Sequence record: MW879344.1
Direction: 5' to 3' (one strand)
DNA: 64,000 nucleotides
This document shows, piece by piece, positions 3,263 through 14,457 of the stretch; the stretch's first letter is position 1; each line of letters begins with the position of its first letter. The position numbers were made by a program, and so were the translations under genes. Below the pieces are notes generated by a model. That model had not been told where the DNA came from, made no database searches, and saw only the letters and a program-made list of their open reading frames with translations.

Positions 3263-3384
3263 GGCGAGTTAGCTCAGTTGGTAGAGCAGGAAAAAAACCG
3301 ATTCTTGTATTGAATCGTACAGCAAACAATACTATTGCACTTTTAATGCCCTTGTCGGGGGTTCAATTCCCTCACTCGCCACCA
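3263..3384 (+). tRNA. tRNA-Lys(TTT) interrupted by a 46-nt insert (3291-3336) in the anticodon stem
   Basis: Acceptor GGCGAGT/ACTCGCC+ACCA; removing 3291-3336 gives GG|GCA-CT-TTT-AA-TGCCC. Confidence 0.85.
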
Positions 3385-7274: not shown

Positions 7275-7680
7275 AATTATTTGTGGATTTCCTGGTATAG
7301 GTAAGAGTAGTATTAAAAATATCGGCAAAGTACTTGATTTGGATAGTTCTTTGTATACCAAGAATTCTTTATTTCCTGCTAATTATATTGTTGATATTGT
7401 ATCTGCAATGGATGAATATGATTATATTTTGGTAAGTACGCATGACGTACTTAGAAAAGAATTACAATCAATGGGTATTAGTTATACTAATGTATATCCA
7501 GAGATTGATTTAGGTGAAGAATACCACGACCGTTATGTTCAACGCGGAAGTCCTGAAAGTTTTATTAATTTTATTGATGAAAATTGGGATGACTTCATAT
7601 ACGAATTGCAGTATGATGATTCTGAATATGTTGAACTGGAAAGCGGTCAATTTCTTTCAGATATTATAGCAAATATTTGA
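7267..7680 (+). CDS. small P-loop NTPase/kinase-like protein
   Basis: Walker A GFPGIGKSS; DLDSS. Confidence 0.75.
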   Translation: MAKIICGFPGIGKSSIKNIGKVLDLDSSLYTKNSLFPANYIVDIVSAMDEYDYILVSTHDVLRKELQSMGISYTNVYPEIDLGEEYHDRYVQRGSPESFINFIDENWDDFIYELQYDDSEYVELESGQFLSDIIANI

Positions 7681-7723: not shown

Positions 7724-7840
7724 GGAATCTTACAGCAAAAATACTAATTTTTGATGAAAACGAAACGACGAGGTTCGAATCCTCACCCACGAATTGCCTT
7801 ATTATTAGTGGGAGCACGGTGCTGGATAAACAAAGATTCC
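7724..7840 (+). ncRNA. module-clamped, permuted tRNA-like RNA (degenerate)
   Basis: GGAATC-TTACAGCAA...GAGG-TTCGAAT-CCTC-ACCCAC...GTGGG...AAACAAA-GATTCC. Confidence 0.65.
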
Positions 7841-8023: not shown

Positions 8024-8141
8024 GAAATCTCACAGCAAACAAAACAATTTTTTTCCTTGCATAGAAAAACGGTGGGGTTCGATTCCCCAACATCCAAGTT
8101 GCTTTTAGGATGTGTCTGGAAGGCCGTATGACAAAGATTTC
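8024..8141 (+). ncRNA. module-clamped, permuted tRNA-like RNA (degenerate)
   Basis: GAAATCT-CACAGCAA...TGGGG-TTCGATT-CCCCA-ACATCC...GGATGT...ACAA-AGATTTC. Confidence 0.65.
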
Positions 8142-8396: not shown

Positions 8397-8506
8397 GGAT
8401 TCGCACAGCAACAATAAAATCTTAAAATTCAATTGGTGAAAACAACCTTGCAGTTCGATTCTGCTTCCACAATGCGTGGATCTGGTCGATAGAAAAAACC
8501 GAATCC
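8397..8506 (+). ncRNA. module-clamped, permuted tRNA-like RNA (degenerate)
   Basis: GGATTCG-CACAGCAA...GCAG-TTCGATT-CTGC-TTCCAC...GTGGA...AAAAAAC-CGAATCC. Confidence 0.6.
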
Positions 8507-8545: not shown

Positions 8546-8698
8546 GGATTTATACAGCAAACATAATCCTAAAATAAAACATACGATAATGTTACTAACT
8601 CGGAATTCGTTCCCTTCGTTAGTACTTGGCAACTTGGGTACTTAAATAAGTTGTATCACCTCACGTGTATCGGATTAGAGGTGATTATAAATAAATCC
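8546..8698 (+). ncRNA. module-clamped multi-hairpin RNA
   Basis: GGATTTA-TACAGCAA...three hairpins...TAAATCC. Confidence 0.6.
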
Positions 8699-9164: not shown

Positions 9165-9239
9165 GGGGTACGTAGCTCAGTCTGGTAGAGCAGCCATGCG
9201 AAAACGGTGTGTCGGTGGTTCGAATCCACTCGCTCCCCA
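9165..9239 (+). pseudogene. degenerate tRNA (Phe-like T-arm, anticodon unresolved)
   Basis: Intact D-arm and GGTGG-TTCGAAT-CCACT; mismatched acceptor and anticodon stems. Confidence 0.6.
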
Positions 9240-9243
9240 CTAA

Positions 9244-9300
9244 GGAATCTAGCAGCAACCATAACCCAATCAAACTTTTAATTTGACAATTATGGATTCC
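9244..9300 (+). ncRNA. module RNA carrying an isolated Lys(TTT)-type anticodon stem-loop
   Basis: GGAATC-TAGCAGCAA...TCAAA-CTTTTAA-TTTGA...GATTCC. Confidence 0.7.
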
Positions 9301-10668: not shown

Positions 10669-10714
10669 ATATAAATTCTGGATTCGAAAGAATCCTTTTT
10701 TAAGTGAGATGATT

Positions 10715-11341: not shown

Positions 11342-11393
11342 AGAATCTAACAGCAATCAAAACTCATTGGATATATGAAAAAAGATAGATTCT
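11342..11393 (+). ncRNA. minimal module RNA
   Basis: AGAATCT-AACAGCAA...TCAT-loop-ATGA-AAAAAGAT-AGATTCT. Confidence 0.65.
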
Positions 11394-11573: not shown

Positions 11574-11700
11574 GGAATTCAACAGCAATTCACTTACTAA
11601 AAACAGCTACCTCACGGTTTGTAGGTTCAAGTCCTACCTTGTACTTTCGAGTACATGTGGTGAAAATGGTAAACACGGCTGTCCAAAAGAAATGAATTCC
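11574..11700 (+). tRNA. circularly permuted tRNA gene, Leu(TAA)-like
   Basis: 3' half 11596-11644, T-TTCG-A linker, 5' half 11651-11682; GCTGT/ACAGC anticodon stem; flanked by GGAATTC/GAATTCC. Confidence 0.75.
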
Positions 11701-11753: not shown

Positions 11754-12353
11754 ATGGAAATGAAAAAGTTGATGGAAGATATTTCTGCCATCATGGAAGG
11801 ACAATTACCTGGTTATTATTATCATGGAAGTTCTGCCCCAATATCAAATTTTAGTGATGAGTTTGTTGGTAGAGGAAATGATGAATACGGTCCGGGAATA
11901 TATTTTAGTTCAGTTCCAAATACTTCTATAGGTTATGCAAAAGATGGCGGTTCTAATGGAATGGTATATCAGTGCGAAATCAATTTAAGAAAAGAACTAT
12001 CTAAAAAAACTAGAGTTAATAAAGCAGTACTATTAAAATTAATGCAAAATACACCTGATGAAGATGCATATACTAACTGGAATGAAAATAAAAATGTTGC
12101 TTATAGAACAGCATTACAGGGTTATGTAGATGAAGGTAATATGTATGATGCGTTAATGGGTGTTTGGTACGATTGGTATAGAGAATATCCTGTTCAATTC
12201 GTGCGTTCACTAGTACAGTTAGGATATGATGGATACATATATACTTTTGCAAGCGGTGAACGTTTTATTATAGTATATAATCCAGCAAGTATAAAAGTTG
12301 TAAACACATTCAATCCAGAAGAAGCTATGCAGAAACTGATTGGAAGTGAATAA
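11754..12353 (+). CDS. ADP-ribosyltransferase-fold protein (ART-PolyVal-like), possibly virion-packaged
   Basis: YYHGS, GPGIYFS, YA, late E motifs; ATAAATA at 11716-11722. Confidence 0.6.
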   Translation: MEMKKLMEDISAIMEGQLPGYYYHGSSAPISNFSDEFVGRGNDEYGPGIYFSSVPNTSIGYAKDGGSNGMVYQCEINLRKELSKKTRVNKAVLLKLMQNTPDEDAYTNWNENKNVAYRTALQGYVDEGNMYDALMGVWYDWYREYPVQFVRSLVQLGYDGYIYTFASGERFIIVYNPASIKVVNTFNPEEAMQKLIGSE

Positions 12354-12361
12354 TAAGATTT

Positions 12362-12479
12362 GGAATTCAACAGCAAATCATTCTAAACCCGTAGCATGTC
12401 GTAGGTTCAAGTCCTACCAGTACTTTCGAGTACTGTAGCTCAGTTGGTAGAGCAGCCACCTTAAAAAGAAATGAATTCC
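12362..12479 (+). tRNA. circularly permuted tRNA-like gene, anticodon unresolved
   Basis: T-arm and CAGTACT, TTCG, AGTACTG and D-arm GCTC/GAGC; flanked by GGAATTC/GAATTCC. Confidence 0.7.
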
Positions 12480-12511
12480 AGTATTAATTAAAACAACATG
12501 AGTATAAATCA

Positions 12512-12961
12512 ATGTCTGATAAGCATCAATTTAAAGTAAACATCGGTGATTGGTCACAAGATGGTCATAATCAATATGATGTTTTAGTTCTTAACAGTAC
12601 TAAACCAGTAGATGAAGTACAAAAAGCATTTAAAAAAGCTGCAACTGATTTACATTTACTAGTAAATGGTCGTTTTCTAATTGCAGATGAATTTGAAGAT
12701 TGTAGTCTATCTGAAGACCATGCAGAAGTTCTTAAAAATGCAGGTGTAAAATTTGATGATTTAGTGTATAATGATGGCGATGATGAAGAACCAAATTATA
12801 TTATTGAAGGTTCAAGTGATATGACTATCCTTGTGATGCGGATCGCCCAACTTGAATTGGACTTTGAATTTGAAATTACGAATGATGCAATTCCGAACTT
12901 TAACGGGTTCTGGACAGAAGAACAAATGCCATCAATCGGATATGGTTTGTATAACATATAA
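12512..12961 (+). CDS. hypothetical acidic protein
   Basis: ORF. Confidence 0.8.
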   Translation: MSDKHQFKVNIGDWSQDGHNQYDVLVLNSTKPVDEVQKAFKKAATDLHLLVNGRFLIADEFEDCSLSEDHAEVLKNAGVKFDDLVYNDGDDEEPNYIIEGSSDMTILVMRIAQLELDFEFEITNDAIPNFNGFWTEEQMPSIGYGLYNI

Positions 12962-12971
12962 AACAAGTTTT

Positions 12972-13034
12972 GGAATCTAGCAGCACCCATAAAATGAAAT
13001 CAACTGTTAATTGAAAAATTCAAAAATGGATTCC
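12972..13034 (+). ncRNA. module RNA carrying an isolated Asn(GTT)-type anticodon stem-loop
   Basis: GGAATC-TAGCAGCA...TCAA-CTGTTAA-TTGA...GATTCC. Confidence 0.7.
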
Positions 13035-13054
13035 AGCCTATTTCGGAGTAAAAA

Positions 13055-13324
13055 ATGTATTATGCTCGATTAGAATATCCAAACAATGGATATGAGATTG
13101 AAAGAATACGTCTTAAAGCCTTAGATCGCAAAAAGTACTACCCAGTAGTTTCGATTGATATTGGTAGTTCAAGTACTCGCATATATCTTGAAGGTGATAA
13201 GAATGCATATAATAGTGTGAACTTTGAATTCTATACCAAACATGGTGATGAATATATTCTTGAAGATATTTTCGAAGACCCTGATTTAAATCCGTACTTG
13301 GATGATGATGATGAAGAATATTAA
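13055..13324 (+). CDS. hypothetical protein
   Basis: ORF with GGAG SD. Confidence 0.8.
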   Translation: MYYARLEYPNNGYEIERIRLKALDRKKYYPVVSIDIGSSSTRIYLEGDKNAYNSVNFEFYTKHGDEYILEDIFEDPDLNPYLDDDDEEY

Positions 13325-13392
13325 ATAAAAATACCACAAATAAATGAAACGCTTCAAAAAATTGTGGTATAATATAAGTAAGTTAAACAAGA

Positions 13393-13464
13393 GGTTATGT
13401 CGTATAAAGGTTATTACGGAGAGCTGTTAACTCTTTTATCTTGGTTCGATTCCAAGCATGACCG
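13393..13464 (+). tRNA. tRNA-Asn(GTT)
   Basis: GGTTATG/CATGACC, GAGAG-CT-GTT-AA-CTCTT. Confidence 0.9.
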
Positions 13465-13581
13465 CAAAAAGTTAAATTCACCAGGCGTACTATGGTGGGA
13501 AAGGTATCATGATACCAATTCGAATAGAATACGTATTAAACCCTTGAACGGTTTTCTGTAAACTCAATTTAACAAATAATT

Positions 13582-13636
13582 AAGAATCTAACAGCAATCA
13601 AAACTCATTCGATTATATGAAAAAAGATAGATTCTT
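13582..13636 (+). ncRNA. minimal module RNA
   Basis: Near-copy of 11342-11393. Confidence 0.65.
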
Positions 13637-13641
13637 GTTTT

Positions 13642-13714
13642 AGGAGTATGGTGTAATTGGTTAGCACACGTGACTTTGACTCACGTAGTTGAGGTTCGAG
13701 TCCTTATATTCCTG
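13642..13714 (+). tRNA. tRNA-Gln(TTG)
   Basis: AGGAGTA/TATTCCT, CGTGA-CT-TTG-AC-TCACG. Confidence 0.9.
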
Positions 13715-13865
13715 CAAATTAAAATTTCATTCATTTCCTTGTGTGAAACAAGCTGGTATGATTCCCCTTGCTTGTAAAATTATCGAACGGGAACCGCGTT
13801 GCACCTGTACAGGTCAGATTGTAAAGATCGAGTATGTACAGTACTGAGAGCGGCAGTACAATAAA

Positions 13866-13947
13866 GCGGGATTAGCTCAGTGGTAGAGCACTTGCCTTCC
13901 AAGCAAGAGGCGAATAGGTTCCATCGGTTCGAATCCGATATTCCGCT
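13866..13947 (+). tRNA. tRNA-Gly(TCC) with enlarged variable region
   Basis: GCGGGAT/ATTCCGC, U73, CTTGC-CT-TCC-AA-GCAAG, ~15-nt variable region. Confidence 0.85.
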
Positions 13948-14065
13948 CAAACTAAACAAACAATAAGGTGATTTTTATGCTATAGAATCCTAGTACTGGT
14001 CCTCCTAAAGAATTTAATTCTGATATAAACAACTCAAAATTAAACTACTATAGGAAGAACATACC

Positions 14066-14400: not shown

Positions 14401-14457
14401 AAGAATCCAGCAGCAACTAAAACTCATTCGCTTAATATGAAAAAGAAACGGATTCTT
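14401..14457 (+). ncRNA. minimal module RNA
   Basis: AAGAATCC-AGCAGCAA...TCAT-loop-ATGA...GGATTCTT. Confidence 0.65.

Follow-up and report, generated by a model that had tools for sequence, protein, structure and literature searches.

An anticodon-arm-like hairpin in the tRNA region of a jumbo phage belongs to a family of putative small structured RNAs

In this study, we revisited a 63-nt stretch of phage DNA and asked why a sequence that lies outside any tRNA gene should carry what looks like the anticodon arm of tRNA-Asn. The stretch, positions 12972-13034, is part of a window of 64,000 nt, by which we mean the whole piece of DNA analysed here. Window positions 12000-14000 are 100% identical to Erwinia phage pEa_SNUABM_49 (MW879344.1, 358 kb) at 306049-308049, and the window is therefore the last 64 kb of this genome. 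Identity to the window is at least 99.5% in Serratia phage BF and in five further Erwinia phages. More distant relatives are the Yersinia phages fHe-Yen9-03 and fHe-Yen9-04, Cronobacter phage GAP32, Pectobacterium phage CBB, Kaldavass and XbC2, and over the region of the element CBB and GAP32 share only about 74% identity with the window. All 21-23 tRNA genes of the first 27 kb are on the + strand, and the 63-nt stretch sits between two open reading frames (ORFs) annotated as hypothetical, 12512-12961 and 13055-13324. Our results indicate that it is a discrete + strand element, most likely acting as RNA, and a member of a family of putative small structured RNAs that stand unannotated in the tRNA regions of this jumbo phage and its relatives.

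The initial annotation of this locus had described nested stems, CCAT/ATGG and TGAA/TTCA, that carry the hairpin TCAA-CTGTTAA-TTGA. Re-reading the sequence confirmed the stems, the loop and the identity of the loop with the anticodon loop of the phage tRNA-Asn (13424-13430). The parts of the element are as follows.

12972..13034 (+), the whole Asn-type element: terminal helix, 5' bulge with AGCAGCA, CCAT/ATGG helix and anticodon-arm-like hairpin
12972..12978 (+), 5' strand GGAATCT of the terminal ('handle') helix, pairing with 13028-13034 (pair probability 0.975)
12972-76 with 13030-34 (+), outer stem GGAAT/ATTCC
12979..12985 (+), invariant family motif (A/G)CAGCA, which follows the 5' helix strand directly and is left unpaired by the model
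12987-90 with 13026-29 (+), CCAT/ATGG stem
12995-98 with 13019-22 (+), TGAA/TTCA stem
13000..13014 (+), anticodon-stem-loop-like hairpin TCAA-CTGTTAA-TTGA, with the loop at 13004-13010 and GUU at 13006-13008
13011..13023 (+), alternative hairpin TTGAA-AAA-TTCAA, which uses the 3' strand of the anticodon-like stem and so excludes it, and which is part of the minimum free energy (MFE) fold
13026..13034 (+), 3' strand, made of ATGG (the partner of CCAT) and the handle helix strand GATTCC; AAAATGGATTC shows no change across the Asn-type alignment

The loop C U G U U A A follows the rules for tRNA anticodon loops, with 7 nt, a pyrimidine at position 32, U33 and a purine at position 37. It belongs to the equivalent of an anticodon arm only: neither ARAGORN nor Rfam called a cloverleaf for 12972-13034, and Rfam assigned the stretch to no known family, its sole overlapping match being noise (mir-1006, E 3-5). 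Outside its tRNA genes the window contains 17 hairpins with a stem of at least 4 bp and a loop identical to that of any phage tRNA, compared with 6.0 ± 2.4 when the sequence is randomised by a first-order Markov chain, and taken alone the single hairpin is not beyond chance. The element is lifted above chance because it is part of a repeated, covarying scaffold and because its core is invariant amid flanks that cannot be aligned.

The conservation of the loop was assessed with a loop-free pattern, in which only scaffold bases were fixed, run on IMG/VR and on metagenomes; a looser first IMG/VR pattern had returned mostly random coding matches. In IMG/VR, all scaffold-bearing matches had either CTGTTAA or the loops of a Lys-type paralog described below, and the Asn-type elements had CTGTTAA only. 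The metagenome scan, with at least 120 loci, added, among the matches listed, three further CTGTTAA variants and one CTGATAA. Free variation of the loop is the outcome that the initial annotation had named as speaking against it, and among these listed matches it is not seen: CTGTTAA is found in nine of ten Asn-type sequence variants and the tenth, CTGATAA, is still canonical. This last element lies on metagenome contig Ga0308167_1074513 (L213 661-720, - strand) and has the Ile-like anticodon GAU. An 18-nt core at 13000-13017 (TCAACTGTTAATTGAAAA), which includes the whole loop, is invariant in nine distinct sequences from about eight lineages, and in the 8/8 sequences that were aligned together with their flanks it is unchanged while the 30 nt on each side are unalignable. 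When 14 sequences, paralogs included, were placed on the structure of the initial annotation, 95% of cells were paired. The outer helix and the anticodon-like stem were paired in 100%, CCAT/ATGG was nearly invariant, and the middle TGAA/TTCA stem, at 79.5%, turned out not to be conserved. In addition, the anticodon-like stem shows two-sided changes between paralogs. Judged by these alignments, purifying selection on the anticodon-arm-like hairpin is strong. In fHe-Yen9-03 the Asn-type element has A-type arms and precedes tRNA-Asp, and the usual Asn slot holds a Lys-type variant; the Asn-type element therefore moves between loci.

The Lys-type paralog of the window has the following form.

9244..9300 (+), Lys-type element with the same handle, a CCATAA/TTATGG helix and the hairpin TCAAA-CTTTTAA-TTTGA, which its MFE fold includes

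Its loop is that of the phage tRNA-Lys(UUU) at 20428, and Lys-type relatives show a compensatory CCACAA/TTGTGG change. The initial annotation had held that a second canonical loop in the same scaffold makes chance less likely. Such a loop does exist, but the Asn-type and Lys-type elements are paralogs that stand one loop base and one extra base pair apart; the two canonical loops thus represent one invention followed by a substitution, and the second is not independent evidence.

What the initial annotation had missed is the wider setting, namely the scaffold family, its members with a YrlA-like elbow, the tRNAs that bear the same scaffold, and a Ro60-like protein of the phage. Between 2 and 14.5 kb of the window there are at least 13 + strand elements with a covarying terminal helix followed by an invariant (A/G)CAGCA, a combination that we refer to as the handle. 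The sequence GAATYYARCAGCA has 10 matches in the window against 0.63 expected, nine of them on the + strand at 2.1-14.5 kb, and in each motif copy the complement of the first 5-8 bases recurs 40-160 nt downstream. The handle is laid out as a 5-8-bp helix of both ends, with (A/G)CAGCA(A) on the 5' strand and an A-rich 3' strand opposite. CAGCA is invariant in alignment A2 and in the Kae01 clade; in Klebsiella phage fENko-Kae01, which represents this third clade, the family is present with further arm variants and ACAGCAA is unchanged. The helix covaries across about 70 distinct elements from the window, its relatives and IMG/VR loci, with G-C/A-U, A-U/U-A and C-G/U-A swaps, although these elements were chosen by a 6.5-of-8 complementarity filter that in itself selects for pairing. 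Pair 1 is G-C in 36 and A-U in 30 cases, pair 4 is A-U in 61 and U-A in 9, pair 6 is C-G in 56 and U-A in 12, and pair 7 occurs as five pair types. Within pairs 1-7 there are about 20 G.U pairs against one A.C, and RNA of the + strand is therefore favoured. No handle copy was found in BF 1-150 kb or in the rest of the window (214 kb examined; 150-294 kb not scanned). Handle elements adjoin tRNA genes at a distance of 5-8 nt or stand just before ribosome-binding sites, and family members precede tRNAs as often as ORFs. They carry no annotation in the phage records ('none' under every match), and full-text literature searches returned no description of them. Handle-like GAATCTAACAGCAA...TAGATTCC is also seen in two IMG/VR contigs that are gut-phage-like and unrelated to the jumbo phage group (L009 and L041, 128 and 169 kb), which could reflect either chance or a wider distribution. 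At 10680-10695 (+) a terminator-like hairpin, GGATTC-GAAA-GAATCC followed by T6, has the same arm as a handle in capped form.

The handle is joined at the site of a tRNA's anticodon stem, in one of three ways: it is an extra arm of a full tRNA, it replaces the anticodon arm on a closed tRNA elbow, or it bears an anticodon arm and nothing else. Four otherwise canonical tRNAs are of the first kind; in these the handle interrupts the anticodon stem on its 5' strand as a capped hairpin, and the flanks restore perfect 5-bp stems.

3263..3381 (window, +), tRNA-Lys(UUU) body with the handle between positions 28 and 29; restored stem GGGCA/TGCCC; Rfam tRNA match of 46.5 bits
2061..2187 (window, +), tRNA body with a GUA loop and the handle between the anticodon stem 5' strand and the loop; restored stem GCGAA/TTCGC
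L002 8143-8264 (CBB), handle-bearing tRNA with a Lys UUU loop; restored stem CGAGC/GCTCG
L001 7159-7279 (fHe-Yen9-03), handle-bearing tRNA with a GAU loop; restored stem CGACT/AGTCG

For 3263-3381, the cloverleaf plus handle has -30.5 kcal/mol compared with -34.5 for the MFE fold. In relatives, the over-long handle-bearing tRNAs are annotated as pseudo, undetermined or OTHER, and tRNAs of the same kinds also exist without a handle, that is, as intron-less copies. The handle-bearing tRNAs look like tRNAs with an intron or with an extra arm. The order of their parts is that of the stand-alone elements, with the handle followed by ACAGCAA, about 10 nt and the anticodon arm, and because this order is identical the hairpin of 12972-13034 is positionally homologous to a true anticodon arm. 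Further handle-bearing tRNA genes lie at L001 6149-6274 and L002 13380-13498, which makes six loci in all, 110-127 nt long. Across the six the insertion site is position 28/29 or 31/32, and three of them have one body (acceptor GCGAGT/ACTCGC) with different anticodon arms.

The modules carried by stand-alone handles are a T arm with capped acceptor and D arm, a small hairpin referred to here as type C, or the anticodon-arm-like hairpin. In addition to the Asn-type and Lys-type elements, the window contains these stand-alone members.

7724..7840 (+), handle element with a T arm and two more hairpins, starting about 10 nt past a TGAAACG...TGTGGTATAAT promoter-like site
8024..8141 (+), handle formed by the arms GAAATC/GATTTC and bearing hairpins and a T arm, as read from the sequence
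8397..8506 (+), handle element with arms GGATTCG/CGAATCC, a T arm and hairpins, likewise a reading of the sequence, with a homolog at L001 13557
8546..8698 (+), long handle element with arms GGATTTAT/ATAAATCC
11342..11393 (+), type C, with a TCAT-loop-ATGA hairpin for which relatives show the covarying TTCT/AGAA; tRNA-Ile follows 8 nt downstream
11574..11700 (+), paralog of 12362-12479 with the same arms, T arm and capped hairpin and a degenerate D arm
12362..12479 (+), YrlA-like handle element with a closed tRNA elbow (T arm, UUCG-capped acceptor stem, D arm)
13583..13635 (+), further type C member, 6 nt ahead of tRNA-Gln
14402..14456 (+), type C handle element; the same slot in fHe-Yen9-03 holds an Asn-type element

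The type C hairpin is represented by 20 distinct sequences, in which TCAT/ATGA and TTCT/AGAA covary. In the elbow elements a 2-bp stub of the anticodon stem is left and the acceptor is sealed by UUCG, as in YrlA, and 12394-12456 is a partial Rfam YrlA match (40.5 bits, E 5e-7, model positions 24-84 of 114) against a gathering score of 69. The two YrlA-like handle RNAs at 11574-11700 and 12362-12479 bracket a 199-aa ORF (11754-12353, +) with an ART-PolyVal ADP-ribosyltransferase domain (PF18760, E 1.8e-11).

The phage also encodes a protein that may be relevant to the handle. BF gp180 is a protein of 508 aa with Pfam DUF2828 and DUF7788 and an invariant DxSxS motif, and is 100% identical in MW879344.1 at 101383-102906. 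Its AlphaFold2 model has a pLDDT of 88, and the top ten PDB matches obtained with Foldseek extend over the full length and are without exception Ro60, Rsr or the Thermus phage TROVE protein (E 3e-10 to 5e-8, TM up to 0.59). On this model, gp180 is a predicted Ro60-fold protein; a sequence-level PDB search with it was uninformative and the fold search alone worked. The Ro-like gene is present in all three scaffold-bearing clades at 58% identity or more. Asteriusvirus Escherichia phage A4 has no scaffold in its 24-kb tRNA region and does not appear in the tblastn list for the Ro-like gene at E<=1e-100, its absence not having been checked directly. Because the Ro-like gene is much more widespread than the scaffold, this co-occurrence is weak evidence, a matter of consistency and not of proof. 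The intergenic regions around gp180 contain no handle. A promoter-like motif, TGAAAC-N13-TGNTATAAT, is common to the Ro-like gene and five sites of the tRNA region, with 14 sites in the 214 kb examined. In the form TGAAAC-N13-TG(N)TATAAT it was seen on the + strand only, at window positions 7678, 7862, 13345, 17383, 26431 and 41636 and at L005 1101; one copy precedes the Ro-like gene operon and another lies about 10 nt before the handle element at 7724. The phage genome also encodes Pnk, an Rnl1-like ligase, two other RNA ligases, RlaP and a CCA-adding enzyme. The Ro60-fold gene adjoins an RNA ligase (PF09414 and PHA02142 OB fold; NC_041917.1 (BF) 99795-103003), and an Acb1-like 2H phosphoesterase and an RlaP nucleotidyltransferase are located elsewhere (L004 7227-7673 and 37898-39142). 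Finally, 5 nt upstream of the Lys-type element lies a tRNA-like gene (9166-9238, +) that was detected by Rfam only (36.4 bits) and has a mismatched acceptor stem; at its anticodon-loop site it carries GCGAAAAC, which contains the CGAA of Ro-binding motifs.

How then might the element work? The reading that we favour, tentatively and at somewhat less than an even chance, is that it is a Y-RNA-like, tRNA-derived small RNA, in which the handle serves protein recognition and the module presents an AAN-box anticodon arm to a protein that reads the loop. The stretch 12972-13034 would be transcribed and processed as a small RNA of a phage-specific, tRNA-derived family. The handle would be the common part, for protein recognition or processing, with the phage Ro60-fold protein as the most plausible partner. 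The module would be the specific part and, if the hairpin forms in vivo, would mimic the anticodon arm of an AAN-box tRNA (C32 U33 ... U36 A37 A38 U39). This arm could be offered to an anticodon-loop reader, either a tRNA-cleaving defence nuclease of the host or a modification enzyme, and could act as a competitor or as bait held on a Ro-like particle. The initial annotation had proposed a decoy for a QUN-specific nuclease or for TGT. The determinant for TGT and colicin E5 is U33-G34-U35, and such a target fits the GUU copy alone, as the Lys-type UUU element and the GAU variant lack these three bases. Candidates that fit GUU, UUU and GAU together may instead be readers of U36-A37-A38-U39, for example PARIS AriB, whose targets are Lys(UUU), Thr(UGU) and Asn(GUU) and which needs the U36-A-A-U39 motif. 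AriB also contacts the D loop, and substitutions at positions 39/41 block it. The U36-A-A-U39 motif is kept in the element, in the Lys-type paralog and in the CTGATAA relative, and the phage's own tRNA-Asn has C39 and its tRNA-Lys C41. These bases would fit the decoy idea, although tRNA stems vary anyway, and a decoy role for the hairpin is possible. More far-reaching, and distinctly unlikely in our view, is a modular system common to Eneladusvirus, GAP32, CBB and Kae01, in which one handle is placed on tRNAs, on elbows and on bare GUU, UUU or GAU arms that act as nuclease baits or decoys. In such a system the handle would be bound by the Ro60-like protein or cut by an endonuclease, and the U36-A-A-U39 arms would titrate or report host PARIS-, PrrC- or OLD-like anticodon-arm nucleases.

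A number of observations weigh against the Y-RNA-like reading. The anticodon-like stem has 4 bp, three of them A-U, where a tRNA has a stable 5-bp anticodon stem, and its pair probability is about 0.01; the hairpin displayed by the initial annotation is thus unfavourable in naked-RNA thermodynamics. In the nearest-neighbour model the 15-17-nt hairpin alone does not fold (0.0 kcal/mol), the competing hairpin together with CAG/CUG pairing to the family motif is more stable than the anticodon-like stem, and competing TTGA-loop-TCAA pairing is possible in every Asn-type variant. The nested fold of the initial annotation has -4.4 kcal/mol compared with -8.4 for the MFE, and the z-score of the MFE is -1.2 when the 63-mer is taken by itself and -0.03 when its flanks are included. 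In Lys-type elements the loop drifts, to CATTTAA, to CTTTTAC and, in CBB, to CCTAACC, with the stem retained, and canonical loop features are therefore not kept universally. A bare arm may also bind AriB poorly, because AriB needs D-loop contacts as well. On the side of the handle, a single family member matches Rfam YrlA, with a score below the gathering threshold, and the T-arm elements at 11574, 7724, 8024 and 8397 are related in layout but have no Rfam YrlA match. The motif of the element is (A/G)CAGCA and not GNCGAA/CGAA. The DUF2828 Ro-like gene is far commoner than the scaffold (711 phage records) and lies about 200 kb from the handle elements.

The explanation that competes most closely, unlikely as we judge it to be, is that the handles punctuate tRNA/ORF transcripts, as sites of cleavage or stabilisation for host RNases (E, P or III), much as the RNase III sites of T7 do, or are intron-like inserts which an unknown endonuclease removes and the Pnk/ligase set of the phage seals; the resemblance to an anticodon arm would then be a functionless relic. 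This would account for the position of the elements next to tRNA genes (5-8 nt) or before ribosome-binding sites, for their confinement, within the 214 kb examined, to the tRNA region, and for the same hairpin in tRNA anticodon stems with exact stem restoration. The complete healing-and-sealing enzyme set and the drift of the Lys-type loops are also in agreement with it. However, it leaves unexplained why the 18-nt core is invariant across lineages that have diverged by about 25% while adjacent module bases change, and why type C modules keep a conserved sequence of their own. Furthermore, with helices so short and irregular the elements do not qualify as classical RNase III substrates, and no endonuclease candidate was identified, though no systematic endonuclease search was made. 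The loop might also be conserved for RNA pairing, since CUGUUA (13004-13009) is complementary to the family motif UAGCAG (12978-12983), which is UAACAG in other copies, and could pair with UA(A/G)CAG in cis or, in other handle RNAs, in trans. The complementarity extends over six bases and is perfect with the UAACAG variants, and the MFE fold uses part of it by pairing GCAG with CUGU. We nevertheless regard this as improbable: the Lys-type paralog has no such complementarity, CTGATAA weakens the pairing yet keeps the canonical loop features, L077 has UAUCAG and thus a U.U mismatch, and compensatory changes are absent because both partners are invariant.

Still less probable is a cis-acting translational operator of the 89-aa ORF 13055-13324 that binds AsnRS, LysRS or a phage protein. 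The element does end 20 nt before the ATG, with GGAG just downstream, and a position upstream of an ORF is also seen in CBB. In fHe-Yen9-03, however, the Asn-type element precedes tRNA-Asp without an adjacent ORF and the homolog of the ORF is preceded by a Lys-type variant; family members stand before tRNAs as often as before ORFs, and the protein encoded downstream matches no Pfam family and is no synthetase. The least probable explanation, to which we attach very little weight, is a chance hairpin within a repeat that functions as DNA, such as a recombination site, a homing-endonuclease target or a promoter. The unremarkable statistics of the single hairpin, the HNH endonuclease genes common in this region of relatives and the apparent swapping of modules between loci speak for it. 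It is at odds with the strict strand bias, with the presence of G.U but not A.C pairs, with covariation that keeps pairing and with a core that is invariant amid diverged flanks, and the element has no internal sigma-70-like site.

Several known signals were also considered and rejected. A sigma-54 promoter (TGG...GC in the 5' arm) would have the wrong spacing, and A-type arms lack GG. There is no sigma-70 promoter site in the element, the Asn-type having no usable -10 although the Lys-type does have TTGACA. An intrinsic terminator lacks the T run after the helix, and the invariant CAGCA differs from the bases of the rrn/lambda boxA antitermination site. A retron msr (terminal repeats and AGC) was discarded in view of the missing reverse transcriptase, the many copies and the lack of an Rfam match, and CsrA sites in view of A-type arms without GGA. 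Trans-assembly of elbow and arm into a chargeable tRNA, in the style of tri-split tRNAs, was rejected as the acceptor is UUCG-sealed and has no discriminator.

Binding of the handle by the Ro60-like protein would make this family the first among Y-RNA-like RNAs to have interchangeable modules, and also the first in which a module is an anticodon arm; the very widespread 'Ro-like' DUF2828 proteins of phages (711 records) would gain a candidate RNA partner. If the arm is a decoy, an RNA-mimic strategy would be added to the phage response to tRNA-cleaving immunity, and baits or decoys of this kind would be an RNA-based counter-defence distinct from the supply of resistant tRNAs. Were the handle to prove an intron, a bacterial virus would have a tRNA intron of the protein-dependent kind.

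Similarities to several known systems can be recognised. RNase III processing hairpins of the T7 type resemble the handle family in that irregular hairpins of 50-60 nt recur between the genes of a polycistronic early region; the handle helices are much shorter, the modules are conserved in sequence and some members have tRNA domains. The thrS mRNA operator of E. coli is an anticodon-arm-like hairpin in an untranslated region near the ribosome-binding site, is recognised through its loop, and thus resembles the element in type and position. In contrast to thrS, the gene downstream of the element is not a synthetase and is not fixed across phages, and the element is part of a multi-copy handle family. 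Interrupted tRNAs are known as tRNA introns, as archaeal split and tri-split tRNAs and as the permuted tRNA genes of Cyanidioschyzon. The family shares with this group a hairpin that interrupts the anticodon stem with exact stem restoration, mini-elements that contain the anticodon part only, flanked by a complementary leader and trailer, and the permuted T-arm-to-D-arm order of the elbow. It differs from the group in that no bulge-helix-bulge was seen by eye at the junctions, no systematic motif or endonuclease search having been made, in that the UUCG-capped phage elbows cannot open into a chargeable tRNA and in that intron-less tRNA copies exist. Of a splicing pathway, the ligase/kinase half alone was identified. 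Escape tRNAs, such as the tRNA-Lys/Thr/Asn of T5 against PARIS AriB or tRNAs against retron effectors, likewise involve Lys(UUU) and Asn(GUU) arms in a tRNA-rich phage. They are complete and chargeable and replace the cleaved host tRNAs, whereas the element is an unchargeable bare arm which could only compete or bind.

The closest parallel is found in Y RNAs. The Ro60 protein of a Thermus phage binds phage-encoded Y-like RNAs with a 5'-3' stem and a motif-bearing bulge (PMC12135203), and the Ro/Rsr-binding motif is GNCGAAN0-1G (CGAA) on the 5' strand (PMC4201824, PMC12135203). Compared with Y RNAs (YrlA, RF02553, and Yrl1/Yrl2 of Thermus phage phiLo), the present family differs in its copy number of more than 13 per genome, in its clustering among tRNA genes at a distance of about 200 kb from the Ro-like gene rather than adjacent to it, and in a phage protein of the divergent DUF2828 type. 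The 12972-13034 element has no Rfam YrlA match at the gathering threshold or otherwise; it lacks the tRNA elbow and has an anticodon arm only, whereas known Y RNAs have no anticodon arm. It shares with Y RNAs a terminal stem formed from the 5' and 3' ends, a conserved 5'-strand motif beside this stem, an internal loop and an effector module at the position of the anticodon stem. Moreover, its sibling at 12362-12479 has the permuted T arm, closed acceptor and D arm of Y RNAs, and a predicted Ro60-fold protein is encoded in the same genome. Although it fails the Y-RNA tests of motif, adjacency and score, the element is in its architecture closest to the Y RNAs.

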